A stretch of 64,000 bases of DNA from Haliotis rubra (Eukaryota). The position numbers and the translations under genes are program-made. Shown one piece after another: positions 1 through 63,106 of this stretch. A model generated the notes under the pieces. The model searched no databases. It saw only the letters and a list, made by a program, of their open reading frames with translations, and was not told the DNA's origin. Numbering within the stretch: the first letter of the stretch is position 1; the number at the start of each line of letters is the position of its first letter. The DNA is taken from NCBI RefSeq assembly GCF_003918875.1, contig NW_025767511.1, positions 186,001 to 250,000 of the forward strand, in the 5' to 3' direction.

Positions 1-1855
1 CTATAGACCGATTACACTTTTGGAAGTTTCAGGAAAGATATTTGCTAAAGTCATTAATATCAGGTTGTATGCATGGGCTCAGCAAGAAGAATTTTTCACC
101 CCAGAGCAAGCTTGTTTTAGACATGGTTTCCAAACAGCTGATAATATTTTTATTCTTCATACAGTCGTTAATAAATACTTATCATTATATAAGGGACAGC
201 TGTACTGTGCTTTTGTCGATTTAAAGGCTGCGTTCGATTCTGTTGACAGAAATAGTTTACTTTACAAGCTGTGGCTTGGAAATGTGAAAGGAAGGACGTT
301 CTCTTTGCTTAAAAATATGTACCAAAATGTAAAGTCATGTGTCTCACTTAAAACAGGTTATACCTCTTTCTTTGAATGCATGTATGGAGTACGCCAAGGA
401 TGTCACCTATCTCCATTTTTGTTCTCCTTTTTTTATCAATGATCTAGTTGAATATTTGTCTGCTGATAATCAGAGGTGTATCGATTTACATTTTATTGAA
501 CTGTTTATTCTGCTGTTCGCCGATGACATTGTTCTATTTGATGGCACAGTTCTAGGGCTGCAGAAGAGAATTGATAAGTTAAGCACGTATTGCAATAAAT
601 GGAAACTTAAAATAAACATTGATAAGACTAAAATTATTGTTTTTAGAAAAGCAGGTAGACTGAGGAAATATGAAAAATTCTTTTTAAATGGAACCCCTTT
701 AGAGAAAGTCTCATCATATAAATATCTCAGCGTCCATTTCTCTTGCTCTGGAAATTGGTATCAAACCCCAAAAATGTTAGCAGAACAATCCTGGAAAGTA
801 CTGTCTATTGTCAGGTCCTCTATGAAAAACTTTACAAATTTACCACTGAAAGTCTTATTACATATATTTGATGTTAAAATTCTTCCAATCTTGATGTATG
901 GTTCCAAAGTTTGGGGTTTTCATCCCTCACCAAATATACAAAATATTCATGACAAGTTTTGTAAGCAAATACTGCACCTACCTATTACTACTCCAAACAT
1001 CATTGAACATGGTGAAATAGGTCGCTATTCTTTGAAGGTTAATATCTACTATAAAATTGTGAAATACTGGACCAGGTTAATAAGTCAAGATGAGATTATA
1101 ATTTTGTATAAAGTATATAAATATCAGTATTGTTTAGCTGAAAAGAATCGTGATTGTTGGGCTTTGAGAGTTAAGAAACTTCTCTTCAGCTATGGTTTTG
1201 GAAATGTTTGGGTTGATCAACAAATTACAAATGTAAACTATTTCCTCATGCAATTTAAGCAGAGGTGTATCGATATTTTGATCTTCAAATGTGGGCTTCA
1301 GATCTTGAAAAATATACTAAACTAGACTTTTTCAGACGGATGAAAATGACTGTGTCAGAAGAATATTACATTAGTGCTGTTAATGTGAAGGTATATTGTA
1401 TTGCCCTTTGTAGATTTTGCTGTTCAAATCATATGTTAATGATTGAACATGGAAGACGTTTAAATCTTGCACGCAACGAACGGTTGTGTTCCTTGTGTGT
1501 TATTCCTATGATCGAATCAGAATACCATTTTTGCCTTGAATGTCCATTCTATTCTGAGAGCATCTCTCATACCACGTTTTTATCATGTATATCCTTCTGA
1601 AAACAAGCTAGCTCTACTGTTTACTTCTCAAAATAATATTGTTATAAACAACCTTGCTAAATATATATTTTTAGCTATGAAAAAAAGAAAGAAATATTTT
1701 GGATCCTGCTGATCTTGTGTTCACATCTCTGTACAATTATACCTCTATGTTCATTCCGTCACTTTTATGGCGCTTCATGTCATATCTTGAATCCTTCTGA
1801 CATGTATGAGTATAAAGGCCCGGTGGCCCCCTTACTGAATAAACACACACACATC
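1..1855 (+). mobile_element. Non-LTR retrotransposon (LINE, RTE-X/CR1-like) 3' portion: frameshifted reverse transcriptase, Cys-rich C-terminus and 3' tail
   Basis: Overlapping ORFs 20-442, 339-1325 and 1265-1600 carry RT motifs FVDLKAAFDSV, GVRQGCHLSPFLF and LLFADD, plus C-terminal RLCSLC..ESEYHFCLECPFY. Ends with AATAAA and (CA)n near 1838-1853. Truncated by the window edge. Confidence 0.92.
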
Positions 1856-27494: not shown

Positions 27495-27687
27495 TCAGGG
27501 TTAAAAACTTCTCACCTGTAGGCAAGAGTCATTCCTCTGTGAGTGGTCGTGGAGTCTAGTGGATGGAGTGTTTGCCTTGGTAGCGACATGTCATAGGTTT
27601 GATCCTAGAACTTGTTGTTTCCCTGCCTTCCACCAAGCATTAGGGATGTAGGACTAAAACTCATCAGCTCAGTGTTGTGAGTGAGGT

Positions 27688-28225
27688 TGGGGAGGGTAAC
27701 CTAGTGGTAAAGCGTTCGCAACGCTCGTCACGCCGAAGACCGAGGTTCAATTCCCCACATGGGTACAGTGTGTGAAGCTTATTTCTGGTGTCCCTTGCTT
27801 TGATATTGTTGGAATATTGCTAAAAGCGGCGTAAAACTAAACTCACTCACCCACTCACTGTAAGTGAGGTATGATTGTTAAATTTTGGCTTCTGATATGA
27901 GCTTGCACCATAAAAAAGCGGCATTAGTCCAGACTAGTTCATGTGGCCACACACATTCATGCTTGTCACAGAAGTGCAGTAATCTGAAATGTGACAACAA
28001 ACCCAATACCACCTCCCCTTCGCGTATTGCAAAATACATGTGGACAGATAAGAAATTTAGTGAGTGAGTGAGTTTAGTGTCATGTCGCTTTTAGCAATAT
28101 TCCAGCAAATATTTCAGGGAACAGAAGAAATGGGCTTCACACTTTATACCCATGTGGGGAATCGAACCTGGGTCTTTGGCGTAACAACCAAACATTTTAA
28201 CCACTTGGCTACACCACTGCTCGCT
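27688..28225. mobile_element. Two SINE family A copies (27688-27858 +, 28060-28225 -); the first splits a degenerate family C SINE
   Basis: Matches to the family A consensus; flanks at 27540-27680 and 27860-28010 resemble the element at 55317. Confidence 0.75.
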
Positions 28226-28241
28226 CCCCCACAAATTTAAG

Positions 28242-28372
28242 TATACTGACCAGCAATAAATACGCAACTCAGAATTTATGAAAATTATACTTTTTCAGCA
28301 TGAGTTTGGATTTGATACTTTAATACAATTGCTTTGATTTCTTGAATTGCGTTTCTTTTGCTGGTCAGTATA
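28242..28372. mobile_element. ~130-bp Tc1/mariner-like MITE
   Basis: TIR tatactgaccagcaa/ttgctggtcagtata. Confidence 0.75.
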
Positions 28373-28761: not shown

Positions 28762-29183
28762 CAGAGCTACAGATAACTTTTGGGGTCATTGAGTTATGTA
28801 CTCTCAATTGGGTACCCTAATTTTCCTTTCTGTAACCAAATAAATTGTACTCACCTCACTCAAACTCAATTGGGTACTTTGCCATTTTCCATTAATTTCA
28901 AAATATAATAAAGTTAAAATGTTAGTGTTTGTTATTTATGTTTTATCTGTATTATGAGAAACTGTAAGTTGTCAAGTTCATGTCCTGAAATAGAACCTCA
29001 CAGTATACCTCAGTTATTTTATCTAACCCCCGGTACGCAAGCTAAGATTTGACATTTTTGTGTGTTTTTATTGAGTATTTACAAAAATTTAAGCGTACTT
29101 GTACACAATAGACTTAATAGGAAATGAGTTTCACATAAATATTTGCATAATTTACGCAGATACGCAGCTTAGCTGTACCTCTG
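28762..29183. mobile_element. Non-autonomous DNA transposon nested in a family B SINE (28605-29265, minus strand)
   Basis: TIR cagagctacagataa/ttagctgtacctctg (13/15 match); 6-bp TSD ctgacc at 28756-28761 and 29184-29189. Confidence 0.85.
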
Positions 29184-29634
29184 CTGACCACCTGATCCCG
29201 TTAGTCGCCTCTTACCACAAGCATGGGTTACTGAAGACCAATTCTAACCCGGACCTTCACCGGTGTAATGACATAAACACTGAGAGACTACTTCCTCCAT
29301 CCTGGGAATTCTTCCCACAATAATCACAAGCAAAATTTCTGATCATTTAGGCATTTTACTCTGGGATAGTTACTCTGAAAGTTTGATTTTATGACTGTTG
29401 AACAATATCCTTAACTTGACCCATCCTAGCGGACGAAACACACAAATGCACATCCAAACTACATCAGTGATCAGACTGACAAAAGACATTCTACAGCAAT
29501 CTATATATTTAAATATCTATTTGACACAGATTTGTAATCTAGTTTAAAAGTGAAATTAAAATCTTTTAATAACCCCGCAAAATACAGAACACACAGATTT
29601 TGACAATGGGGTTGTGTAAGGGGAGCTCTTGTGT

Positions 29635-29848
29635 TGTTGGTTGTTGTTTAAACACGCTCTCAGCAATATTCCGGCTACATTGCGGTGGTCTGTAAATAAT
29701 CGTGTCTGGACCAGACAATCCAGTGATCAACAGCATGAGCATAGATCTATGCAATTGGGATATGATGACATCTCAACCAAGTCCCGTTGGTTGCCTTACG
29801 ACAAGCATGGGTTGCTGAAGACCAGTTCTAAGCCGGACCTTCATGGGT
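29635..29848 (-). mobile_element. SINE family B
   Basis: Reverse-complement match from the tail through to the ccc.tgaagg.ccgg 5' end. Confidence 0.82.
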
Positions 29849-29931
29849 GCAGGAGCTCTTATGTGAACATCATTATCATTATTAATTATTACCACTACAA
29901 ATTTATATTTTATACTTATATTTTCCTAATA

Positions 29932-30510: not shown

Positions 30511-30917
30511 TATATGGATCCTAATATATTGCTTGTAATGGTAATAATTAATAATGAATTTTTCCATGAATTATCATGGAGAAATAATTCATAGAAAAAT
30601 TCATTTTTAATTATTACGCCATGATACCATTCTGGTACCACCACAAAGCAACACTTCTAGCTTTCATAGCACACATGAATTAGTACAGGACGACATCTTA
30701 TTTTGACTCATGTGGCCATATTTACACGACTACTAATCCACACTTTCAGCATTTAATCACAATGGACATTTATGAAGTGCCTGTATCCAAACACTTGTGC
30801 ATGCTCAGGGTGCAAACACATATAGCTAGAACGTTAGCAGTCACATGACTTCTTATCCCACCAGGTACCCATTCACTGCTGGGTGAACAGAGGCAATTAT
30901 GAGCAAATCACTTGCCT

Positions 30918-31098
30918 GGACTAACGGGATGAGGTGGTCAGGTTCGCTGACTTGGTTGACATATGCTGTTGTATCCCAACTGTGTAGATCAATGCTTATG
31001 ATGTTCATCACTGGATTTTCTAGTCCAAACTCCACTATTTACAGACCGCCACAATACAGCTGGAATATTGCTGGGCATGGCGTTAAAGAATAAATAAA
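30918..31098 (+). mobile_element. SINE family B, 5'-truncated
   Basis: gactaacgggat...gctggaatattgctgggcatggcgttaaag followed by an (aata)n tail. Confidence 0.8.
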
Positions 31099-31169
31099 CA
31101 TTGGGGAACAAGGTTCCATTTTTTGTATCCTTACCAAAAGTTATTTGTTTTTGTAGAGGTGGTGGGAAG

Positions 31170-32330
31170 ATGTCGTGCAGCAAGGTGTCCCAGCTTGCTG
31201 CAGCCGATGCCAAGTTCAGCATTGACCTCTACAGAGCACTGTCCAGTTCCATGTCTGACCAGAATCTGTTCCTGTCCCCCTACAGTGTCCTGTCTGTCAT
31301 GGCCATGGCATACATAGGTGCCCGAGGAACTACAGCCTCAGAGATGTTGCAGGCCTTAAGACTGACGGAAATATCAGAAACCATCCACATCGCTTTTCAG
31401 GAGTACCTGGCAGTTATGAGCAGCAAAGCAGAGGGCTGTGATTTAGCTTCAGCTAATAAATTATATGTGAGAAAGGACAAGCAACTGTGCTCGGAGTTTT
31501 CCAAAAAGGTGGCACAGCATTTTGGAGCTGAGACTGACTCATGTGACTTCATCGGAAACCCAGAATCAGAGTGTGCCAGGATCAATGCCTGGGTGGCCAA
31601 ACAGACCCACGATAGGATCCAAGGTGTCATCTCACCGCTTTCTCTCACTAAAGACACATCAATGATTTTAGTAAATGCCATCTATTTTAAAGGAAAATGG
31701 GAAAATGTTTTTGATAAGGGCTTAACTGAAAAGGGCTCTTTCACAGTCTCCTCTTCAAAGAAGGTCGCGGTTGATATGATGAACACTGTGGACACGTTTG
31801 GGTACAGTGAGATTAAAGACTTGGACTGCACGGCACTGGAACTACCCTATGTAGGGGACAGACTCAGCATGGTGATCCTCCTTCCCAGAAAATCAAATGG
31901 TTTAAGTTCCCTGGAACAGAACCTCAAGCCTCATCATCTCCAGGTCCAGTTCACTGGTAATTCATGGAATGAGGTTGATGTGTCACTTCCAAGGTTTAAG
32001 ATGGAGTCCAGTTTTGAGCTTGCTGATGTCCTGTCCATGTTAGGGATGTGTACTGCTTTTGACCCCGTGGAGGCCAACTTTTCTGGGATTGATCCATCAG
32101 GGCTGTTGACCTTGTCCAGGGTCGTCCACAAGACCTTTGTGGAGGTCAATGAGGAGGGTACAGAGGCAGCAGCATGCACCATGATGGACTGTGTGGATGG
32201 GTTGGTGATACAGGAGAAGCATGTCTTCAGGGCTGATCATCCGTTTATATTTTTCATCCGAGACAGACGAAGTGAGATGATCCTTTTTCTTGGGAGGATT
32301 GTGAATCCAGAAGGCCTGGAAACATGCTAA
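31170..32330 (+). CDS. Divergent intracellular (clade-B-like) serpin with uninterrupted CDS; RCL GTEAAACTMMDCVD|GL
   Basis: Intact ORF with NLFLSPYS, LVNAIYFKGKW, EEGTEAAA and FRADHPFIFFIRD. Acceptor tttttgtag ends at 31156 and ATG is at 31170. No signal peptide or KDEL-like end. Confidence 0.96.
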   Translation: MSCSKVSQLAAADAKFSIDLYRALSSSMSDQNLFLSPYSVLSVMAMAYIGARGTTASEMLQALRLTEISETIHIAFQEYLAVMSSKAEGCDLASANKLYVRKDKQLCSEFSKKVAQHFGAETDSCDFIGNPESECARINAWVAKQTHDRIQGVISPLSLTKDTSMILVNAIYFKGKWENVFDKGLTEKGSFTVSSSKKVAVDMMNTVDTFGYSEIKDLDCTALELPYVGDRLSMVILLPRKSNGLSSLEQNLKPHHLQVQFTGNSWNEVDVSLPRFKMESSFELADVLSMLGMCTAFDPVEANFSGIDPSGLLTLSRVVHKTFVEVNEEGTEAAACTMMDCVDGLVIQEKHVFRADHPFIFFIRDRRSEMILFLGRIVNPEGLETC

Positions 32331-32444
32331 GTCTGCTAGGTTCAGATATTGTCGATCCATTATAGATCAGTGGTCACCATAGTTGGAATCATCATGACAG
32401 AGTTGCAGATCTATACAGTGTTATTTCTGTTTAATATGACACAA

Positions 32445-32690
32445 TATAATAATAATAATCTTTATTTGCACTGAGAAGGCAACAGGCCTATAGTACATAA
32501 AGTTATGTTACATTTGAGAGGAATTTAGATCGGGTAATCATAGCATAGTAAATGAACATTGAAATATTTTGTAGAAGAACTGGATTTTTACTACTTAACA
32601 GTGAGGAGAATTTTATCATATTTGGATGGACATAGTAATATCTTTTAATATATTTTGTTCGCAACCGGTCATAAAATGGACATATTAGGA
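32445..32690 (-). mobile_element. 5'-truncated LINE 3' end, similar type to 1-1855
   Basis: Minus-strand peptide ICPFYDRLRTKYIKRYYY...MFIYYAM, followed by AATAAA and an (att)n tail. Confidence 0.75.
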
Positions 32691-32767
32691 TTGTATGAAT
32701 AACGTGGGTGATGCAACACAATATCATCCAGTGGATGGATATGATTCTTATGTGTTTGAACAGTTAC

Positions 32768-33810
32768 TCATCACCATAACCATCATCACTTCGGTAACCA
32801 TCACCATCACCACCATCTTGTAAGTCACCATCACCAGAACCAGTCTCCATCATCCACCACCACCTACACCTTGAATGCCATCTCCATCATCCACCACCAC
32901 CTCCACCTTGAATGCCATCTCCATCATCCACCATCCCTGTCGCCATCACCCTCTCCACATCATCCATCATCACCATCACATCCACCATCACAGTCATCAT
33001 CATTATCACGTCATCGATGACGCCATCCCTGACACCATCACCATGTCATCGATGATGCCATCCCTGACACCATCACCACGTCATCGATGATGCCATCCCT
33101 GACACCATCACCATGTCATCGATGACATCATCCCTGACACCACATCATCGATGATGCCATCCCTGACACCATCACATCATCGATGATGCCATCCCTGACA
33201 CCATCACCACGTCATCGATGACCCCATCCCTGACACCATCACCATGTCATCGATGACACCATCCCTGACACCACATCATCGGTGATGCCATACCTGACAC
33301 CATCACATCATCGATGATGCCATCCCTGCCACCATCAACGTCATCGATGACCCCATCCCTGACACCATCACCATGTCATCGATGACACCATCCCTGACAC
33401 CATCACCATGTCATCGATGACACCATCCCTGACACCATCCCCCATACCTGACACGATAACACCATCGATGATGCCTGGCACCATCAACGTCATCGATGAC
33501 CCCATCCCTGACACCATCACCATGTCATCGATGACACCATCCCTGACACCATCACCATGTCATCGATGACACCATCCCTGACACCATCCCCCGTCGTTAA
33601 CGATAACACCATCCCTGACACCATCACGTCATCAATGACACCATCCCTGACACCATCACCATGTCATCAATGACACCATCCCTGACACCATCACCACGTC
33701 ATTGTTGACACCATCACCTCCACCTTGCATACCATCTCCGTCATCCACCATCACAGTCGCCATCACCCTCTCCATCATCCACAATCTCTGTCGCAATCAA
33801 CATCACCACA
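32768..33810. repeat. CAT/CAC-rich low-complexity flanks with a ~30-33-bp minisatellite core
   Basis: gtcatcgatgaYRccatccctgacaccatcaccaY repeated from ~33010 to 33715. Confidence 0.93.
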
Positions 33811-34689
33811 TACATAACCATCAGTTCCATTTTACCATGTCAATATGGTAACAAAAGGTAATTTTGAGGGCATCCTCCTCAAACAAACACTGATCATAGA
33901 GATCATGTTGGTGACACATATACTCAAGTTTTCATTCTCATTTCATTTTGATTACAGCAAGAGGAATCTGCCACTTAGGCTTATAGCATTGACTTGTAAT
34001 GATTAGTAAATTAGTACATGCTTTGAGGCAAATATGACCCACTTTTTGTGCATCATCATCTAACATACGAAGCTGGGAGTATTCCTCAGTATCCCAATGC
34101 TCTTAGAAAGGCTTATGTATTCTTCAGAGCTCTTTTTGGACCTCTCCCCAAGACAGACTGCTATTCCACAGGATGTCTGTTTTCAATGAGGTCAATGTGC
34201 AATAAAAATCATTTCTGAACGAAAACTTCAGATGTTTCAGTACTATTCTTGTTCATTTATCTACATCACATAGTATGTATTTCTTTTTAGGTGTTATGTC
34301 AAATAAAGGTGGTTAAAATGACATCACAGAAAGTCAGTTTTTGATGTTGAGAAGTGGAGGCGACACCTGGATGGAATAAAGGCAAAGACGAACATATGCA
34401 TTTAATTCTTTGAGAAAGGTAATATTTCGGGATAGGATAGTTTGTTTGTTTAATGGCACATTTAGCAATATTCGAGCTTTATGGTGGTGGTCTGTAAATA
34501 ATTGAGTCTAGGCTAGATATAATGCAGTCGTGTACATATACACAATTGGGATACAATTACGTGCGTCAATGAAGACAACAAGCCTGACTGCCCGATCATG
34601 TTAGTCACCTCTTGCAACCAGCATGGGTTGCTGAAGACAAATTCTAACCAGGATCTTCATTGGTAAGCCAGTAAGATAGTAGTGGAGGG

Positions 34690-41891: not shown

Positions 41892-42031
41892 NNNNNNNNN
41901 NNNNNNNNNNNNNNNNNNNNNNNNNNNNNNNNNNNNNNNNNNNNNNNNNNNNNNNNNNNNNNNNNNNNNNNNNNNNNNNNNNNNNNNNNNNNNNNNNNNN
42001 NNNNNNNNNNNNNNNNNNNNNNNNNNNNNNN
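41892..42031. other. Assembly gap (140 N)
   Basis: Run of N. Confidence 1.
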
Positions 42032-47719: not shown

Positions 47720-48930
47720 CCTCCCACTACCCGTCCACCCACACTCGCCAGAGACCTCCCCTACCATCTATCCACCCTCACCAGAGACCTCCCCTACCAT
47801 CTACCCCACCTCACCATAGACCTCCCACTACCATCTATCCACCCTCACCATAGACCTCCCACTACCATCCACCCATCCCTCACCAGAGACCTCCCCTACC
47901 ATCTACCCACCCTCACCATAGACCTCCACCTACCATTCACCCATCCCTCACCAGAGACCTCCCCTACCATCTACCCACCCTCATCATAAACCTCCCACTA
48001 CCACCCATTCTCCCTCGCCAGAGACCTCCCACTACCATCCACCCACCCTCACCAGAAACCTCCCACTACCATCCACCCACCCTCGCCAGAGACCTCCCAC
48101 TACCATGTACCCACCCTCACCAGAAACCTCCCACTACCATCCACCCACCCTCGCCAGAGACCTCCCACTACCATGTACCCACCCTCACCAGAGACCTTCC
48201 ACTACCATCCACCCACCCTCGCCAGAGACCTCCCACTACCATCTACCCACCCTCACCAGAGACCTCTTACTACCATCCACCCAATCACACCAGAGACCTC
48301 CCACTACCATCCACCCACCCTCACCAGAGACCTCCCACTATCATCTACCCACCCTCGCCAGAGACCTCCCACTACCATCCACCCACCCTCACCAGAGACC
48401 TCCCACTACCATCCACCAATCCCTCACCAGAGACCTCGCACTACCATCTACCCACCCTCATCAGAGACCTACCACTACCATCCACCCAATCACGCCAGAG
48501 ACCTCCCACTACCATCCACCCACCCTCACAAGAGACCTCCCACTACCGATCCACCCACCTCTAGCCAGAGACCTTCCACTACCGATCCACCCATCCCTCG
48601 CCAGAGACCTTCCACTACCGATCCAGCCATCCCCTCGCCAGAGACCTCCCACTACCATCCACCCATCCCTCACAAGACACCTCCCACTACCATCCACCCA
48701 CCCTCGCCAGAGACCTCCCACTACAATCAAACCACCCTCGCCAGAGACCTTCCACTACCGATCCACCCATCCCTCGCCAGAGACCTCCCACTACCATCCA
48801 CCCATCCTCGCCAGAGACCTCCCACTACCATCCACCCACCCTCACCAGAGACCTCCCACTACCACCCACCCACCCTCGCTGGAGACCTCCTACTACCGGT
48901 CCACCTACAATGGCAAGAGACCTAGCATTT
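47720..48930. repeat. 34-bp minisatellite, ~35 copies
   Basis: Unit ccagagacctcccactaccatccacccaccctcR. Confidence 0.96.
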
Positions 48931-50296
48931 AAAGTCCACCCACCAATCGCTAGAGACGTCCCATCGCCGAATACCCAAAACCACCCACCCCTTTAAACAG
49001 ACCATCATCACTGGGCCACCATCCGTCGCTAGAGTACACCCGCCCTTCTTAGAGTCAACTCACCGCCGACATAGACATCCCTCAATAGGCACCATCACCG
49101 CCGGCAGTCCACCCGAGCTAAATATCTCCTATCACCGACCCACCTGGAACCCTCCATTTTTCGCTTGAGACCACCCACTAGTAGCTCACCCATCACAGCC
49201 ACATCTCCTTGCTTCTATAGGTAACACATACATTCTCAACACACGGTGCTCTTCGCTGAATAGGCCTTCTCCAGTCTCATATAAATCACTGTCGAGGTAT
49301 CTGTTTGTCACGAGTTGGACCCACCCGTATAAATACTCTCTACCCCATCTAATCGAGTGGCATGACAAACGGTTTCCGGCCATAAAATATGCGAGAAAAA
49401 TCTTATCACATATCTCCATTTACAGTAAATTGATATGCTGTATTAAATTTACTCCACACCGTAAACACAAGTGGCCATTCTCCCCGGAGACAAAGATAGT
49501 TCAGAATAATGTTGTTAATGCTGAAATAAACACATATAAACGATATTGCCTCTATATATTATTTTGTGTTTTTCACGATGTAATGGTCCGGTTTTCATCT
49601 ACTGAACAGTCCCGTCATGTTCACTGTCACGTTCTCTCCGCCTATTAGTGTCGACTTGAAAGGTAATAGCATCTTTACAACTATAGCCATGTCACAGGGT
49701 ATCTCAAGCCATTCTAAACCCAGCCGTAATATTATCCTCGCAACTAATCCCCAATTGTGACTTCATTGTAAACCGTCGTCAGCGAACCGTCACCCACCAT
49801 TAAATGTCCACAGGGTGCTAACGTAACGCTTACGGCTAGTCTTACGTTAACATTCGCTTAGCTGCAGTCAGTCTAATGACAATGTGATATGTAATCTTGA
49901 TTCGGGCCCACCATTTAAATCTGTAGCCCGAACTGAGCTTGTTATTCGTAACTAGATAATGTATTCCCACTAATAAGGCTACATTATAGACCTTATAAGC
50001 CGTGAATTTTACGCGGCTTAACCATTTGCGGGATGTTACGTTTTTCACGCTGGTACATCTTTGATATTCCAATCTAGGAAGAAGTAAGTGGGTAATTGGG
50101 TTTTAGTTTGTTGACATTCCGCACAATGAAATTTGTCGTGATTACATGTCACACCGAAGGTTCATCACGCAAAGGGTGGATGAGATGGTTCTTGTGGCAC
50201 TATGACTGGATTAGGGAACGATGCTTGTACTCAAAGATGTGCTCCCAGTCACTGTAGTTTAGCTGCATTTCAAACTTACAATACTTAACTATAACT

Positions 50297-50845: not shown

Positions 50846-52559
50846 ACGTTGTGCACATAATGTTTAATTTAACCAGTTAGCCTTGTCTCCCATCGTTTCC
50901 ATGACGACACGCGTTGATTCCGTAATGAAAGTCGAGCCCTAAATTATTTATGTAATAAGTGAACGAAGTGGATGTATGCTGATCTCCCCCGATCGTTGCT
51001 GATCTTGATAAGACTACGTCACGGTACACCGCACTGTTTCCCGTCCTTGACACGTCCTATAGTAAACTGTTCATTTCGTCATGGAGGGTGGGGTAGCCTA
51101 GTGGTTAAACCGTTCGCTCGTCACGCCGAAGGTCCGTGTCCGATTCCCCACTGGGGTACAATGTTTAAAGCCCACTCCTGGTGTCCCCCACAATGATATT
51201 GATGGAGTGCTGCTAAAAGCGGCGTAATACCATACTCACTCACCTTAGCAACACGCAGACAGATGCACTCAATCGATTTTTGGTTCTGCTAAATTTTTAA
51301 AAATTAATTTGTAAAGAACGCTTTAATGCTATCGGGATGCGCTGACACGTCATCGACTATTTTACCGACGCTGGCCATTCTCTGGTCACCTCTATTAATA
51401 CCATTCCTATATTTGGATGACCTTCCGACGAGTGAGTGAGTAAATATGGTTTTACGCCACCTTTAACAATATTCCAGTAATATCACGGCAAGGGACACCA
51501 TAAATGGGCTTCACACATTGTAACCATGTGGGGAATCGAACCCGGGTCTTCGCGAGACGAGCGAATACTTTAACCACTAGGCTACCCTACCGCCCCACTT
51601 CCTGTGTCCTTGTACCTAACTGAAAAGACAAGGCGCAGAAACACATAACATTCTATAATAAAACGTTAATTTCTTCACGAGCCTTCTCATATATGTGGGC
51701 GGTGTTGTAGCCTAGTGGTTAAAGCGTTCGCTCGTCACGCCGAAGATCCGGGTTCGATTCCCCACATGGGTACAATATGTGAAGCCCATTTCTGGCGTCC
51801 CCAACCTTGATATTGCTGGAATATTGCTAAAAGCGGCGCAAAAGTAAACTCCCTCCCTCACTCACTCTCACATACATGTATGTTTATTACCCTTCATGGT
51901 GACTGCCATGTTTGGTGAAACCTCACCCCCCATAATAAATGACCAAAAACACCGGTCTCTATCTACGCCTAAGCTGACGTTGCTGGGATCAGTGGTAACA
52001 TTGAATTTCCAGGGCACAGACAAATATACGGACGTAGGAAAGAAAACACCCACCATGTCACGTGTCATGTATTGCACGTGCATGGGCTTAACCACTGGTT
52101 ACCACCACCTCATATCTAACAGTTTTCAATATTTTTATTTACGTAGATTTTTGCAGTTTCATGAATGAGTGACATAGGCATCAGTTAGATACATTGTCGG
52201 AATACTATGCCGTGCCGCCATTCTTTGCTATGCGTACTGACCTATTCTTGTACGCCCTTAATACGGTATACGGTACGTAATCGTGGCCAAGAACGTTAGC
52301 CGCCTCTGACAATAATATGCGATAAGAGTGTTCGAAATGTAACATGATTTGATAACGATTTATCTTTTCAAGACCTTAGATACAGGCTACCTTATATCAG
52401 ATTAACTGTATGTAAGACATTGCGAAGAAACAGTGTAGACGATAAGGATGTACATGTATTACATACACAGTGTACATCGTAATGACATGGAGAGGCAAGA
52501 TGACGAAGGCGTGGCTCTGTGAGGGCGAAGACGTAGAACGGTGACATGGAGTAGTCCGG

Positions 52560-53350
52560 ACGTAGCTGTTGGATTTTGACGTCGTAGATATAGGGCAGTG
52601 ACGGCGTAGCTGTTGGATAGTGACGCCGTAGATATAGGGCAGTGACGGCGTAGCTGTTGGATAGTGACGGCGCAGATAAAGGGCAGTGGCGGCGTAGCTG
52701 TTGGATAGTGACGCCGTAGATATAGGGCAGTGACGGCGTAGCTGTTGGATAGTGACGCCGTAGATATAGGGCAGTGACGGCGTAGCTGTTGGATAGTGAC
52801 GGCGCAGATATAGGGCAGTGACGGCGTTGCTGTTGGATAGTGACGCCGTAGATATAGGGCAGTGACGGCGTTGCTGTTGGATAGTGACGCCGTAGATATA
52901 GGGCAGGGACGGTGTAGCTGTTGGATAGTGAGGCCGTAGATATTGCGCAGTGACGGCGTTGCTGTTGGATGGTGACGCCGTAGATATAGGGCAGTGACGG
53001 CGTAGCTGTTGGATGGTGACGCCGTAGATATAGCGCAGTGACGGCGTTGCTGTTGGATGGTGACGCCGTAGATATAGGGCAGTGACGGCGTAGCTGTTGG
53101 ATAGTGACGCCGTAGATATAGGGCAGTGACGGCGTTGCTGTTGGATGGTGACGCCGTAGATATAGGGCAGTGACGGCGTAGCTGTTGGATGGTGACGCCG
53201 TAGATATAGGGCAGTGACGGCGTAGCTATTGGATAGTGACGCCGTAGAAAAAGGGCAGTGACGGCGTTGCTGTTGGATGGTGACGCAGTAGATATGTTGT
53301 GACGGCGTTGCTGTTGGATAGTGACGCCGTAGATATAGGGCAGTGACGGC
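52560..53350. repeat. 44-bp minisatellite, ~18 copies
   Basis: Unit gtagatatagggcagtgacggcgtagctgttggatagtgacgcc (starts at 52584, 52628, ...). Confidence 0.96.
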
Positions 53351-54787
53351 AGAGAAGAGTAGCCACGACGCACACACACAATAGAAACGAAGACATGAGT
53401 AGCAAAGGCGTCGAGATCATAGTGATGAACTGAAATGAGTCGAACTTTGTATTCGCTTGTTCTACGGCATTAGATTCAAGTTGCTGTGCAGTGTTGCATT
53501 CCCTGGGCACGCCAGGAACCTTTGATCGTGTGCCCGGATGTCAGGATCATAGCGGTAGCCTTAGTACATTTGCACCACGTGGACCCGGGTCAAACGGACA
53601 AGCTCAGATTGTTGCATACAGTCCCAAAGCAGGATTATGCACCCTTAAACAACATTCACATAATGTCTGTGACTTGGCAACCCAATCTTCCATCTTAAAC
53701 CAATACGTACGTTACAATATATCTTCCAAAAGGCCGTCATCTTCTCCGATCTCTTATATCAGTACAGCACACGGTATGCCTGCAGCTTTAACACCCTTCA
53801 CCCCCCAACCACACCCCCTACTCCCGACCTCCTTTCCGGGTCACTAAACAGGATCCTCTTCAGTTTCGACCCCGTCCTCACCCGTCTACGAACTCCCCAC
53901 CCCCAGTGCGTGGGAATCCCTTCCCCTTTGTTCACGTGTCTATTTACCCCTCATCCACATTCTCAGATCCACATGACCCTCATTTTCACCCATCCTACCC
54001 CTTCCACCCCGACCCCAGGACTAAATATCCCACAGAATCCTCTTCCTCCCCGGGCAACCTCTTCTCTCCCACGGTCCCGATCGAAGACACACGGAGAAAG
54101 TGTCTTAACATCACGAAATAATCCAGCAGGATAGCTTGGATTACCATGAATGACAACGAGCAAGGCCACAGACTGAAAGTGGGTCAGCCCGGATGAGATA
54201 CTATATTCTTACCACTTAAGTTGCACTCCATTTGATTGTCAGGCGCTCCAGGATTCCCAGAGTCTTCTCGCTACGCTGAATAACCACCATACAGTACGCG
54301 ACCCTCAAATGGGAGTCCCGGGGGTTAAGAATTAAACAGCTCTCGGTTCATCACCTCGACCCGTTGGTGGTATCGTTTTATGTTCTCTCTGGAATCGATT
54401 ACCGGAACCTTTCCATTCCGATATTCTGTTACGACGAAACACCAGAGATACTTTATGCCTTTACAAAGCCTCTATTACACTAATACTCAAAGCCATATAC
54501 GGTTAGATTACGCTCTCTTGAAGCCATGTGCAATTAAACTTCACTAGCTCGAAATCTTATTTTGTTGCAATTCGCTGACTCGAAAATGTCACAATATACC
54601 AGAGTTTTAAATGAATGAGTCGAGTTTGCTGCCGCAAATGGCAAAACTCCAGCATCATCAGGGCATAGGAAGCCAGGAATCTGCTTCAAACATTCTGCCA
54701 TGCTGAGACTCAAACCCGGGCCTCCAAAACTGAACGCACACAGAAGAAATTCATAGGTTCTCTTGAACAAGCTTGGAGACATGGTAC

Positions 54788-55681: not shown

Positions 55682-58600
55682 TGTAATGTTAACTAATCAA
55701 AAGCGATGAATCATTTCAACATCCATAGGAAGCTATGTAAGTCTCTGCTAAAAGCAAATTCGATAGCGCAGTTCCGACTCAGTGCGCATGCGTTTTTGAA
55801 CCAGTATCACATAGTGATGATACCGGGTGTCCTCTAGCGAACTAACCTTCATCCTTTTTGGGCCGTTTTCGTTTTTTCAGCTTGCCTAACATTTAAACAC
55901 CTACCTCAATATCTATCACTTCGTTTCGACTTCAAAACGGTAGGGACGGTGGGGTAGCCTAGTGGTTAAACGTTCGCTCGTTACGCCGATGATCGGTGTT
56001 TGATTCCCCACATGGGTACAATGTGTGAAGCCCATTTCTGGTGTCCCCCGCCGTGATACCGCTAGAGTGAGTGAGTGAGTTTAGTTTTACGCCGCACTCA
56101 GCAATATTACACCTATACGGCGGCGGTCTGTAAATAATCGAGTCTGGAAAAGACAGCCAAGTGGACATCTGGCATGAGCATCGATCTGCGCAATTGGGAA
56201 CCGATGGATATTGCTGGAATATTGCTAAAGGGGCGTGAAGCCATACTCATTCACTCACTCACCCACTGACTCAAAACTGTAACTTTAAACACCAAAGCGC
56301 AATCACGTTCTGTTTATTACACAATGATACCATCCTTCCTTCATCAGTACCAAATGTGCCGTTGACGTTAAAATGGTACTTAGCACCTTCGCCAACTTCT
56401 ACGCTGGGTCTGGGGCTCTTGTCAGTTACTGTAGGTGTTAAGTATATATATTACGACCTTTTACTTTCCCCTGGTTTCCCCGAGTTGTATAAGTGTCGTA
56501 TTACACGGAACGCCGAATACAACGCATGGCCGTCACATTGTGCCGTGATCGTGGATCACGGGCTGAGAGGTTAACCTATTATCCTAACAGTGTATGTAAG
56601 TAGAATGTCAAACACTGCGAGGAGCTCGAGTGGATTTCGTTGAATGGCAGTAATAGCTTCGTCTCTATGCAAGTACTATCTTGTAATAAGGACAGGGGTC
56701 TTATTTGTACTCGTTATTTGCGCTTTTTAAACTGAAAACATTCCGAAAAATGAGTTAATTCTTTTCGGGGGCCACTGGGCCACGTACAGTGGGTATTCAA
56801 GAGTGTCTGGGGTGAAGTCCTTATGGTACACATGGTGTTTCACTGCGGATCGTGTGGTCACAATGGAGCCTGCGCATGGTTTATTGTTCGTGAGGGGTAA
56901 CAGGGTAACCTAGTGGTGAAAGCGTTCGTTTGTCATGCCGAAGGTCGAGGTTCGATTTTCTGCTTTGTGTGAAGCCATGTACGGGTTGGTTGGTTGTTTA
57001 ACGCCGCACTCAGCAATATTCCAGCTATATGGCGGTGGTCTGTAAATATCGAGTCTATACCAGACAATCCAGTGATCAACAGCATGAACATCGATCTACG
57101 CAAATGGAATACGATGACGTGTTTCAACCAAGTCAGCGAGTCTGTCCACTCGATCCCGTCAGTTGCCACTTACGACAAGCTCGCAATATGGCTGGAATAT
57201 TGCTGGATGCGGCGTAAAACTAAACTCACTTTCGACAAGCATGGGTTACTGAAGACCAATTCTAACCCAGATCTCCACGGGTCGCCCTGTACTGGTGTCT
57301 CTGCGTATCCCCGACGTTCTATGGTTGGAATTACATCACACGGCCACTATTCACACTTTGCTGAGGATCAAATAGAAAACTATGATGTCGGGTCCAATTG
57401 GTTCATACATTTAAGCTTATTGTAAGCATGGTTTCTAGGTTTCAGTATGTCATTGCATCGTGTGGATCCCATACCTGCTATTGACAGGTGTTGTTTATTT
57501 GTCAATGACTCGTTTCATGATTTGCAAAATAGTTGATTGGTGCCATGAAACTATTTTTACGGTGACTCATGTATCAAGTGCATAAGGTTAGAATAAAGTG
57601 GCTGTCTGCCTAAAGAGGGGTTACCATATTAGTATTTATCCAGTTTTAAATGGATACAATTTCATATTATAAATCTACGTTTAAGTAAAGTTGTGAATTT
57701 TTGTGATCCTTATCAAAGTGTGAGTAGTATACTATACTTACAATATCGGTGAGTATGTCAGATCAGTTTTTCGCTGAAATGGAAATTCCCGATTTTCTCT
57801 GAAGTCTCGAAGTGAACGTACCATCTCCTAAATTGCACATCTCCATGTGTGTCGGATCGGATTGAAACGACACCTACTTAATATTTGCACACGAACCGTA
57901 CGAACATACTAGTAACTTGTCACCGTGAAGCCTGTAATGAAATCATAATTTGCAGATCCGGCAGCTTATCGTGAGTGATACGCTCCGAAGTGCCCGTGAA
58001 GATCAGGGTTAGAATTGGTCTTCAGCACCCCATGCTTATCGTAATAGGCGACTAACGGGATCGGGTGGTCAGGCTCGCTCACTTGGTTGACACATGTCAT
58101 CGCATCTCAGTGACATAAATCGATGTTCATAACGCCAATCACTGGATTGCCTCGCCCAAACTATCGATGCCTCCTTACTTTTGTGTATTGTTAAATGGAT
58201 ATTAAATCACAAACAAAATGAAATTTGTAAAGTCGCGACTGACCCACTTTCAGGAGAGCCGAGTGTCAAGCGAGACGATACTTTATGTATTTCAACCGAG
58301 TTTAAGTAGGTCAGACAATGACCTACATTCATTGATATAGACAATGCAGTATCTGCACACATATCTACCGGGCTTTTCTCTACATAGGTAATACAATCAG
58401 ACATGTTGGCAGATAAAACAGTCTGTCACCTGCTCTGGTAGTCACGAGCTTCAGCATGGCCCCACAAACACAACAGAGGAACAAAACCGTTAACAGATGA
58501 AGTTGTGGGACAATTGTTGTTGTTTACTGTTGTCAAGCGAGAAGGTAAACACATAAGCTTTACGAGATTATAAAAACCCATTACGAAACATTTGCGGAAT

Positions 58601-61503: not shown

Positions 61504-63106
61504 ATGGTATCGTCCCCTGTGTCGTCACGTCTGGGGGATAACGCTCGTCATCGTTCTGTTCATAGCACATAGTGCGTCGTCAGACGAAGGCGGCTGTCCA
61601 CATGGTTGTACATGCTCCGCCACCATTATAGACTGTCGTCATAGCAACCTGACGTCACTTCCTTCCACACTTCCTCTTGCCGATACGATTGAGAGGTTAC
61701 TTGTTTCGGGCAACCGGATAAAGCAGATTGGAGTTGAACTTAAGTCTTACCCAGCACTCGAACGAGTTGATGTTGCATCCAATAACATCAGTAGCATCAG
61801 CGACGGAGCTTTCAGTGGCATAGAGAATCTGGACAATCTGATTCTTCGTCGGAATTATCTGGTAAAGTTGACGAACGAGACCTTTCAAGGTCTCCGCGCG
61901 CTCAAGACCTTGGACTTGGGATACAATGTCTTGAAAACCTTACCCAACGGTGCTTTCCGAGACTTGAAAAACTTGCAGCAATTAGATTTGATGAAAAATA
62001 ACATTTCATTCATCGAAGACGATGCTTTTGATGGCTTGGAGTCTTTGAAAGTTTTGAATCTAACAAGAAACCTTCTTCAAGTGTATCCTACAACCGCTCT
62101 CTCAAAACTGACATCCGTTACCCGTCTCGTCTTGGATGACAACAGGTTGAAGAGCATACCCAGATTTGCATTTGCAGGTCTTCGGAATCTGAAGTTTTTG
62201 AGCTTGAATGGGAACCATCTAGCAAGCTTAGAACCATCAGCGTTTGCCGTGCTGAAGGCAGGTTCTGGAACCTCTTTAGTGGAACTCTCCATAAAAGGAA
62301 CAGACTTGAACGATGTCCCAACTCCAGCGTTTCAAAGTCTTACAAGTCTTGAAATACTAGACATCAGTAAAAATAAATTCAAAATTTTCAAGAGGGGGTC
62401 TTTTAATGGGTTGAGAAGTCTTCGGAAACTGACAGTCACATCCTCTAGATACTTGACAACCATTGAAAATGGAACATTTGAATTTATGTCGAATTTAACG
62501 GAAGTCATCATAAGAAACAATAAAGCTCTTACGGCGATTGGAGAGAGGGCTTTTCCCACCGGGGGAACTCTTGTGGTTCTTGATTTAAGTTCCAATTCCA
62601 TTCACACATTTTATCGAAACATGGTTCCATGGGATAAAAATGCGACTGTTGATATGAGAAATAACCAACTGTTCTGTGACTGTAATATTGTGTGGATGTT
62701 TACAACTCTGAAGAACGCCAATAATCCGATGACAAAAACATATGCGTCAAATCTTTCCTGCACAGCTCCGGATTCATACAGAGGTAAAAATTTATTCTCG
62801 CTTTCCAATTCAACCTTCAACTGTGACATTGCTAAACCTTATACCCATGACGTTCTGAGTCGGGTCAAGGTCGCTGCAGTTGCTGCAGGCATCACAAGCA
62901 TTTTACTCATGTGCTGTGCGCTTTTCATCAAGTTCCGAAAAAAGATTTGTATGGTAGTCAGAAGACAGTATCGGTACCGCCAGTATAAAAACAATGGTTC
63001 TCTTTCAGAGAGTAGGCAGAACGGGGAACTCACTGAAGAAGGTACTGCAATGGAGGTCATAAGTTCATATAAAGATGACCCTGAAATTGAAGTTCAAGGT
63101 CAATAG
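61504..63106 (+). CDS. Type I membrane leucine-rich-repeat protein: signal peptide, LRRNT, ~12 LRRs, LRRCT, TM and short Tyr-containing tail; no TIR; 1-nt frameshift near the start
   Basis: The frame of ORF 61868-63106 is open back to 61502 (ITLVIVLFIAHSASS-DEGGCPHGCTC...IDCRHSNLTSLP). LRRCT NQLFCDC...CTAP; TM VAAVAAGITSILLMCCALFI. Acceptor ttttctag ends at 61488; Kozak acgATGg at 61504. Confidence 0.9.

Follow-up and report, generated by a model that had tools for sequence, protein, structure and literature searches.

A candidate host-encoded caspase-directed serpin with a DCVD↓G reactive-centre loop in the abalone Haliotis rubra

Serpins can act across protease classes on caspases, as CrmA and Serp-2 do (PMC10526531, PMC2315678). 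CrmA presents the sequence LVADC, with Asp at P1, and baculovirus p35 offers the pseudosubstrate DQMDG (PMC2315678). In the microsporidian Nosema bombycis, the serpin NbSPN14 binds and inhibits BmICE, and mutation of its P1 residue abolishes the effect (PMC11741654). Among cellular serpins, PI-9 (SERPINB9) inhibits caspase-1 and, less so, caspases-4 and -8, but not caspase-3 (PMC11222584). Our search of the literature on abalone or mollusc serpins and caspases found nothing specific, and we came upon no host-encoded serpin described as having a DxxD↓G bait (the arrow marks the scissile bond) of executioner type. An initial annotation of the DNA analysed here considered a cross-class inhibitor of executioner caspases unusual for a cellular serpin. 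That judgement holds in part, given the action of PI-9 on caspase-1 (PMC11222584) and of the microsporidian P1-Asp serpin on a caspase-3 homologue (PMC11741654).

The window, a stretch of 64,000 nucleotides of the abalone Haliotis rubra (contig NW_025767511.1, positions 186,001 to 250,000), contains a serpin gene that had been counted as the eighth of its kind; consistent with that count, tblastn with its product (serpin 8) recovered seven further serpin copies upstream in the window. Serpin 8 resembles CrmA/SPI-2 and myxoma Serp-2 in being of intracellular type, in lacking a signal peptide and in having an Asp at the proposed P1 position, and like CrmA it has Cys residues in the loop. CrmA differs in that it is viral, carries a caspase-1/8-type bait (LVAD↓C) with no Asp at P4 and Cys at P1', has Tyr in place of Gly at P15, and has a loop of 23 residues as opposed to 24. 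Baculovirus p35 shares with serpin 8 a D-x-x-D↓G sequence, which it offers to executioner caspases (PMC2315678), but it is a viral protein with an unrelated fold and another trapping chemistry. NbSPN14 is likewise a non-viral serpin with a predicted P1 Asp; however, the parasite secretes it into the host cell as an effector, and it is not a host gene. Human SERPINB9 and SERPINB1 (LEI) are cellular clade-B serpins that, like serpin 8, have no signal peptide. However, PI-9 has Glu at P1 (VVAE↓C) and granzyme B as its main target, SERPINB1 has Phe/Cys at its reactive site, and neither carries a DxxD↓G bait. By its proposed function serpin 8 would join the small set of caspase-directed serpins, and would differ from them as a host-encoded, invertebrate member of the DxxD↓G executioner type.

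The complete coding sequence of serpin 8, stop codon included, occupies 31170-32330 on the forward strand and encodes a clade-B-like intracellular serpin of 386 residues. The 386 codons run uninterrupted through one coding exon, from the ATG at 31170 to the stop codon at 32328-32330. The ATG follows a textbook splice acceptor, tttgtAG/AGGTGGTGGGAAG-ATG. Through its polypyrimidine tract and AG (31150-31156, forward strand; tttgtAG/AGGTGG), the coding exon would be spliced to a 5' leader exon that lies further upstream and could not be located. The acceptor motif is kept in H. asinina and H. rufescens. The 13 nucleotides between acceptor and ATG (31157-31169, forward strand) are in frame and free of stop codons, but if translated they would read GGGK, GART and GAGT in the three species, as against 84-92% identity over the protein. 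Because they are not conserved as protein between species, these nucleotides are best taken as 5' untranslated sequence, and the NCBI models of three serpin 8 orthologues begin at the same Met (MSCSK). A gene overlapping serpin 8 on the minus strand was ruled out, as the open reading frames there reach at most 94 amino acids.

Transcript-like contigs of serpin 8 came from three small public runs (X1-X3) that carry the same organism label and hold 36-57 Mb of contigs each; the RNA status of these runs is a guess of the tool, with the contig break at the acceptor as its sole support. Contigs from the small runs span the coding sequence at >98.5% identity, and the match of those from X1 and X2 breaks off at exactly 31156, with 28 and 8 further letters that do not match. 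A contig from a 1.5-Gb DNA run (X16) passes the acceptor unbroken (31008-32332). The small runs have zero depth in non-repetitive intergenic bins. Serpin 8 thus appears to be transcribed and spliced, with its whole coding sequence in a terminal exon joined to an upstream leader. Every serpin coding sequence in the window lies directly 3' of a splice-acceptor-like site (for example before 6858, 10395, 21945 and 25492), and among the window serpins it is for serpin 8 only that transcript-like contigs support the acceptor. An acceptor thus precedes each coding sequence, and NCBI names the serpin 8 orthologues as isoforms of one gene ('leukocyte elastase inhibitor-like isoform X2, X7, X4'), which suggests that the serpins have a leader exon in common that is spliced to alternative terminal exons, each with a whole coding sequence.

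Past the stop codon, at 32447-32455, the transcript-like contigs of two runs leave the match at 32447 and continue for 156-173 unmatched letters, and from there onward the DNA-run depth is ~100-fold higher. The break probably reflects an inserted repeat or a polymorphism in the 3' untranslated region of serpin 8 in this assembly. Directly downstream of serpin 8 lies a long simple repeat coding for His, Pro, Ser and Thr (CCATCA/CCACCA-like, 32700-33850) that produces spurious long open reading frames in several frames, and a His/Pro-rich repeat likewise lies downstream of the H. asinina orthologue (L001 11880-12899).

The seven upstream copies form a tandem array (2876-26694, forward strand) with a period of ~3.55 kb and are 43-45% identical to serpin 8. 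Their scaffolds are nearly identical to one another (96-98%), and the 5-6 residues before the conserved S-L/R-P differ, giving the baits TIKKR, TIMFL, IFMSN, RIMTR, MIMCN, TFMFL and RIMTR. Copies 1, 4 and 5 are split by frame breaks in the assembly, and all copies end in KTEL or KSEL. A degraded non-LTR retrotransposon with reverse-transcriptase fragments (20-1600, forward strand; Pfam RVT_1, E 1.6e-8) precedes the array. Copies of a very high-copy interspersed element lie at 27573-28336, 29101-29291, 29674-29864, 30820-31201 and 56994-57425; its open reading frame fragments share ...HGLLKTNSNPDLH..., and the element reaches a depth of up to 10^4-10^6 in the contig sets and had no match in Pfam. 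Towards the 3' end of the window, an open reading frame of 412 residues (61868-63106, forward strand) encodes leucine-rich repeats (LRR_8, E 1.5e-53) together with a hydrophobic stretch, a short tail and a weak match to LRRCT; it probably represents an exon of a leucine-rich repeat membrane protein. Two tandem-repeat tracts (48105-48932, forward strand, and 52397-53379, reverse strand), read in overlapping frames, give open reading frames of 250-326 amino acids (PPSPETSHYH... and ...TALYLRRHYPTATPSLPYIYGVTIQQ...). The tracts most probably represent satellite DNA and not genes. At 41892-42031, 140 consecutive N mark an assembly gap or masked sequence.

Residues 12-380 of serpin 8 match positions 2-370 of the 370 in the Pfam Serpin profile (PF00079; E 1.4e-116, 390 bits), and the AF2 model has a serpin fold (pLDDT 90.5, pTM 0.85). 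All top Foldseek matches of the model are serpins, the best being cleaved LEI, PI-9 and MENT at an rmsd of 1.5-1.8 Å. The model is in the relaxed, loop-inserted state, with residues 330-343 as the inserted strand at high confidence. It shows that the loop is compatible with insertion, and it is uninformative on the P1 residue or the target. The closest solved relative is human SERPINB1 (4ga7, E 8.6e-76), and MENT, PAI-2 and SERPINB3/4 are also among the closest.

Serpin 8 has neither N- nor C-terminal extensions, and its C terminus lies 6 residues past the conserved Pro380. The absence of a signal peptide, noted in the initial annotation, is borne out by a serpin fold that begins at about residue 8, with helix A from about residues 5-8, for the protein as encoded downstream of the unlocated leader exon. 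Since there is no signal peptide, serpin 8 is predicted to be intracellular, and its compartment would be the cytosol, the same as that of the caspases. The protein had also been described as Cys-rich, and it indeed has 10 Cys residues (2.6%) compared with 1 (0.25%) per intact array copy. Eight of these are common to all four Haliotis species compared, including C336 and C341 in the loop, although a redox role for these two loop cysteines is speculation.

The reactive-centre loop reads EEGTEAAACTMMDCVDG-LV, and the peptide singled out in the initial annotation, EEGTEAAACTMMDCVDGLV, is found at residues 328-346, encoded at 32151-32207 on the forward strand. Its hinge, E328-E-G-T-E-A-A-A-C336 (canonical P17-P9; 32151-32177, forward strand), is of the inhibitory type with small residues. 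The consensus for inhibitory hinges has Glu at P17, Gly at P15, Thr or Ser at P14 and small residues at P12-P9, to which serpin 8 conforms; E328, G330, E332 and A333-A335 are invariant in an alignment of 46 serpins. By the alternation rule for strands, T331, A333, A335, T337, M339 and C341, which are all small or hydrophobic, would point into the core once the loop has inserted, with D340 on the outward face. The sequence supports a full-length inhibitory-type scaffold, for which trapping of a protease is predicted.

Which residue of this scaffold meets the protease depends on the register. Counted from the hinge Gly330, Asp343 is residue 14, Gly344 is residue 15 and Leu345 is residue 16. The candidate bait D340-C-V-D343↓G344 (32187-32201, forward strand) would span P4 to P1' if Asp343 is P1, placing Val at P2 and Gly at P1' and the proposed scissile bond between nucleotides 32198 and 32199. 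The earlier count of 14 residues from the hinge Gly to the second Asp is correct. Taking Asp343 as P1, so is the statement that this is one fewer than in the array copies, where residue 15 (R, L or N, followed by S) is the canonical P1. In the CrmA structure (PDB 1f0c) the loop is VNEEYTEAAAATCALVAD↓CA in 1f0c_A, ending VNEEYTEAAAATCALVADCA, and 1f0c_B starts STVTNEFCADHPF; the P1 Asp of CrmA is 14th from the P15-equivalent residue, the same as Asp343 of serpin 8. The claim of a CrmA-length loop therefore survives for the distance from hinge to Asp but not for the entire loop. Measured from the hinge residue as far as the Phe at the start of strand s1C (the Phe before RADHPF), serpin 8 has 24 residues, one more than the 23 of CrmA, SERPINB1 and the array copies. 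The loop is thus CrmA-length only given Asp343 as P1; in the canonical register, with Gly330 at P15, P1 is Gly344 and Asp343 is P2. As the full loop has 24 residues, we rejected a shortened loop as independent evidence, the argument being circular.

The acidic pair itself is rare at this place. In 388 loops fetched from other serpins, Asp is found at position 14 in 4, at position 15 in 0 and at position 16 in 4, and none of the 388 has DxxD where serpin 8 has its bait. With Asp at a frequency of ~2% at positions 11-13, DxxD would be expected there by chance in well <0.1% of serpins.

Serpin 8 has one-to-one orthologues in H. asinina (92% identity), H. rufescens (84%) and H. cracherodii (within the 90% cluster of H. 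rufescens). No orthologue of >=50% identity was found outside Haliotis by a word-index search, a loop-focused search and an exhaustive HMMER scan of 1.84 billion representative proteins. The conservation of the motif in orthologues, proposed earlier as a check, was found within this one genus, where DCVDG is invariant in four species and under purifying selection. Loss of the motif from orthologues, which the initial annotation had named as a refutation, was not seen. The segment C336-T-M-M-D-C-V-D-G344 is the same in all four, with silent GTG/GTC/GTT changes in the V342 codon. Against H. rufescens, the 17 codons E328-G344 have 5 silent and 0 replacement changes (dS 0.78, dN 0). The fast-evolving P' segment that follows, L345-V352 (32202-32225, forward strand), leads into the conserved C-terminal anchor of the loop, FRADHPF of strand s1C (32226-32246, forward strand). 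Omega is 0.5-1.55 for the eight codons of L345-V352 and 0.13-0.20 for the rest of the gene, and variable columns number 7 of 8 in L345-V352 versus 0 of 9 in C336-G344 (Fisher p = 4e-4). Since seven of the eight residues after Gly344 vary and none of the nine that end with it do, constraint ends right after Gly344. Caspases recognise P4-P1 together with a small P1' residue and little that follows. This boundary of constraint therefore fits a caspase-type reading and not residue 345 (L, L, F, L) as P1.

In a maximum-likelihood tree, serpin 8 is sister to the H. asinina protein (99/93) within a four-species clade (100/100). The clade branches among the gastropod serpins, and its stem is very long (1.18 changes per site). 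Serpin 8 groups with gastropod serpins and not with fish LEI-like proteins, although its best solved match is SERPINB1. The gene has the same position in H. asinina and H. rufescens, where it closes the serpin cluster at the 3' end, directly downstream of another serpin. The upstream neighbour in H. asinina has the same bait as copy 7 of the window. That in H. rufescens (L002 6838-8004) has a poly-basic loop, VVVRKRKRVRED, with ANRPF in place of ADHPF, and its bait looks like a furin or proprotein-convertase type, unlike those of the H. asinina and window neighbours. By descent serpin 8 is, judging from these relationships, a gastropod cellular serpin of the intracellular clade-B-like kind and not a relative of CrmA.

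A viral or horizontal origin was rejected on the grounds of synteny, the spliced leader and the placement of serpin 8 in the tree. Descent from poxvirus SPI-2/CrmA was ruled out by the length of 386 amino acids, the absence of CrmA from the 60 best PDB matches, the nesting among gastropod serpins and synteny in three genomes. A search of viral contigs for a natural CrmA-like relative gave only one unrelated serpin of an uncultivated virus, without a loop Asp. Because serpin 8 nests among gastropod serpins and CrmA is not in its 60 best solved relatives, any likeness of their baits is convergent.

Under the reading that we favour, the DCVD↓G loop of cytosolic serpin 8 would be a pseudosubstrate for Asp-specific cysteine proteases, most likely executioner-type caspases with a preference for DxxD. 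An active caspase would attack the Asp343-Gly344 bond, the segment from hinge G330 to D343 would then insert into beta-sheet A as strand 4A, and the enzyme would be trapped in the fashion of CrmA, so that serpin 8 would serve as a brake on cytosolic caspase activity. We infer that P1 is Asp343, that the target is a caspase and that serpin 8 inhibits the enzyme instead of just being cleaved by it. The proposal that serpin 8 inhibits caspases, as a candidate host-made inhibitor, is a tentative one that falls a little short of an even chance. Its fuller form, in which the abalone has its own suicide-substrate inhibitor that traps DxxD caspases at Asp343-Gly344 and may be tuned by oxidation of C336/C341, is more doubtful. 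An endogenous inhibitor of executioner caspases was what the initial annotation had proposed: the scaffold, the compartment, the CrmA distance, the conservation of the bait and transcription argue for it, and the shortened-loop argument drops out as circular.

Further points bear on a caspase as the target. Serpin 8 has kept its place in the cluster while neighbouring copies change their baits, which we count in favour of caspases. Molluscs have several executioner caspases, in expanded sets (PMC3037946), and inhibition of the silkworm caspase-3 homologue by NbSPN14, the P1-Asp serpin of Nosema, depends on its P1 residue (PMC11741654). Counting against this, the main caspase targets of CrmA and PI-9 are caspases-1 and -8, and their effect on caspase-3 is poor or absent (PMC11222584). 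The P3 residue of serpin 8 is also unfavourable, as it is Cys and caspases prefer Glu at this position. A good caspase substrate motif is no guarantee of inhibition, and the grafting of optimal tetrapeptides into CrmA has not always produced good inhibitors.

An unlikely alternative, though the one that survives best, is that serpin 8 is an ordinary guardian serpin against a serine or a papain-like lysosomal cysteine protease, as are SERPINB1, SERPINB3, MENT and SRP-6. Its scissile bond would then lie elsewhere, for example after Leu/Phe345 (position 16) or after the canonical Gly344, and the Asp pair would be only subsite determinants. The nearest solved relatives (SERPINB1, MENT, PAI-2 and SERPINB3/4) are consistent with such a role, as is the canonical register, in which no Asp is at P1. 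Residue 345 as P1 would give the 24-residue loop a normal P' length, and this residue is always hydrophobic (L, L, F, L); Val342 could moreover be the P2 of a cathepsin-L-like enzyme. However, residue 345 varies whereas the nine preceding residues do not, contrary to expectation for the main specificity residue, and Gly is a poor P1. Also against a guardian role, an acidic pair with P4/P1 spacing is present in 0 of the 388 other serpin loops.

The same motif, conservation and cytosolic location that suggest a caspase trap are shared by a quite unlikely second alternative, in which DCVD↓G is a switch cut by caspases. Cleavage during apoptosis would inactivate or convert serpin 8, freeing a protease that it normally holds. 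Non-target proteases routinely inactivate serpins by loop cleavage, optimal caspase substrates are not necessarily inhibitors, and a possible analogue is the conversion of LEI to L-DNase II after loop cleavage. However, trapping is favoured by a hinge of fast-inserting inhibitory type and by an Asp at the exact CrmA distance, and no second conserved P1 candidate is evident for another target. The remaining alternative, that the target is another Asp- or acid-specific protease or that DxxD is lineage-specific drift without a link to caspases, accords with orthologues in Haliotis only and with the very long stem branch of 1.18 changes per site, but is decidedly improbable given the purifying selection on the bait (dN 0 versus dS 0.78), the very low chance of DxxD arising at the bait place and the fact that granzyme-like Asp-specific serine proteases are not known from molluscs.

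Caspase-blocking serpins have been described chiefly as viral and parasite weapons, as in CrmA, Serp-2 and NbSPN14. PI-9 is the one well-studied cellular case, and it acts on inflammatory and not executioner caspases. Should a caspase assay prove negative, serpin 8 would simply be one more intracellular serpin. If the caspase reading of serpin 8 is true, it would be the first host-encoded serpin with an executioner-type bait, and animals would themselves have turned the serpin trap on executioner caspases. In molluscs, apoptosis would then be controlled by a serpin as well as by the expanded IAP family. Serpin 8 would also offer a natural scaffold for learning how the length of the loop and the sequence of the bait determine whether a caspase is inhibited or only cleaves the serpin, and would provide research on mollusc cell death with a concrete regulator that bears on the responses of abalone to stress and disease.
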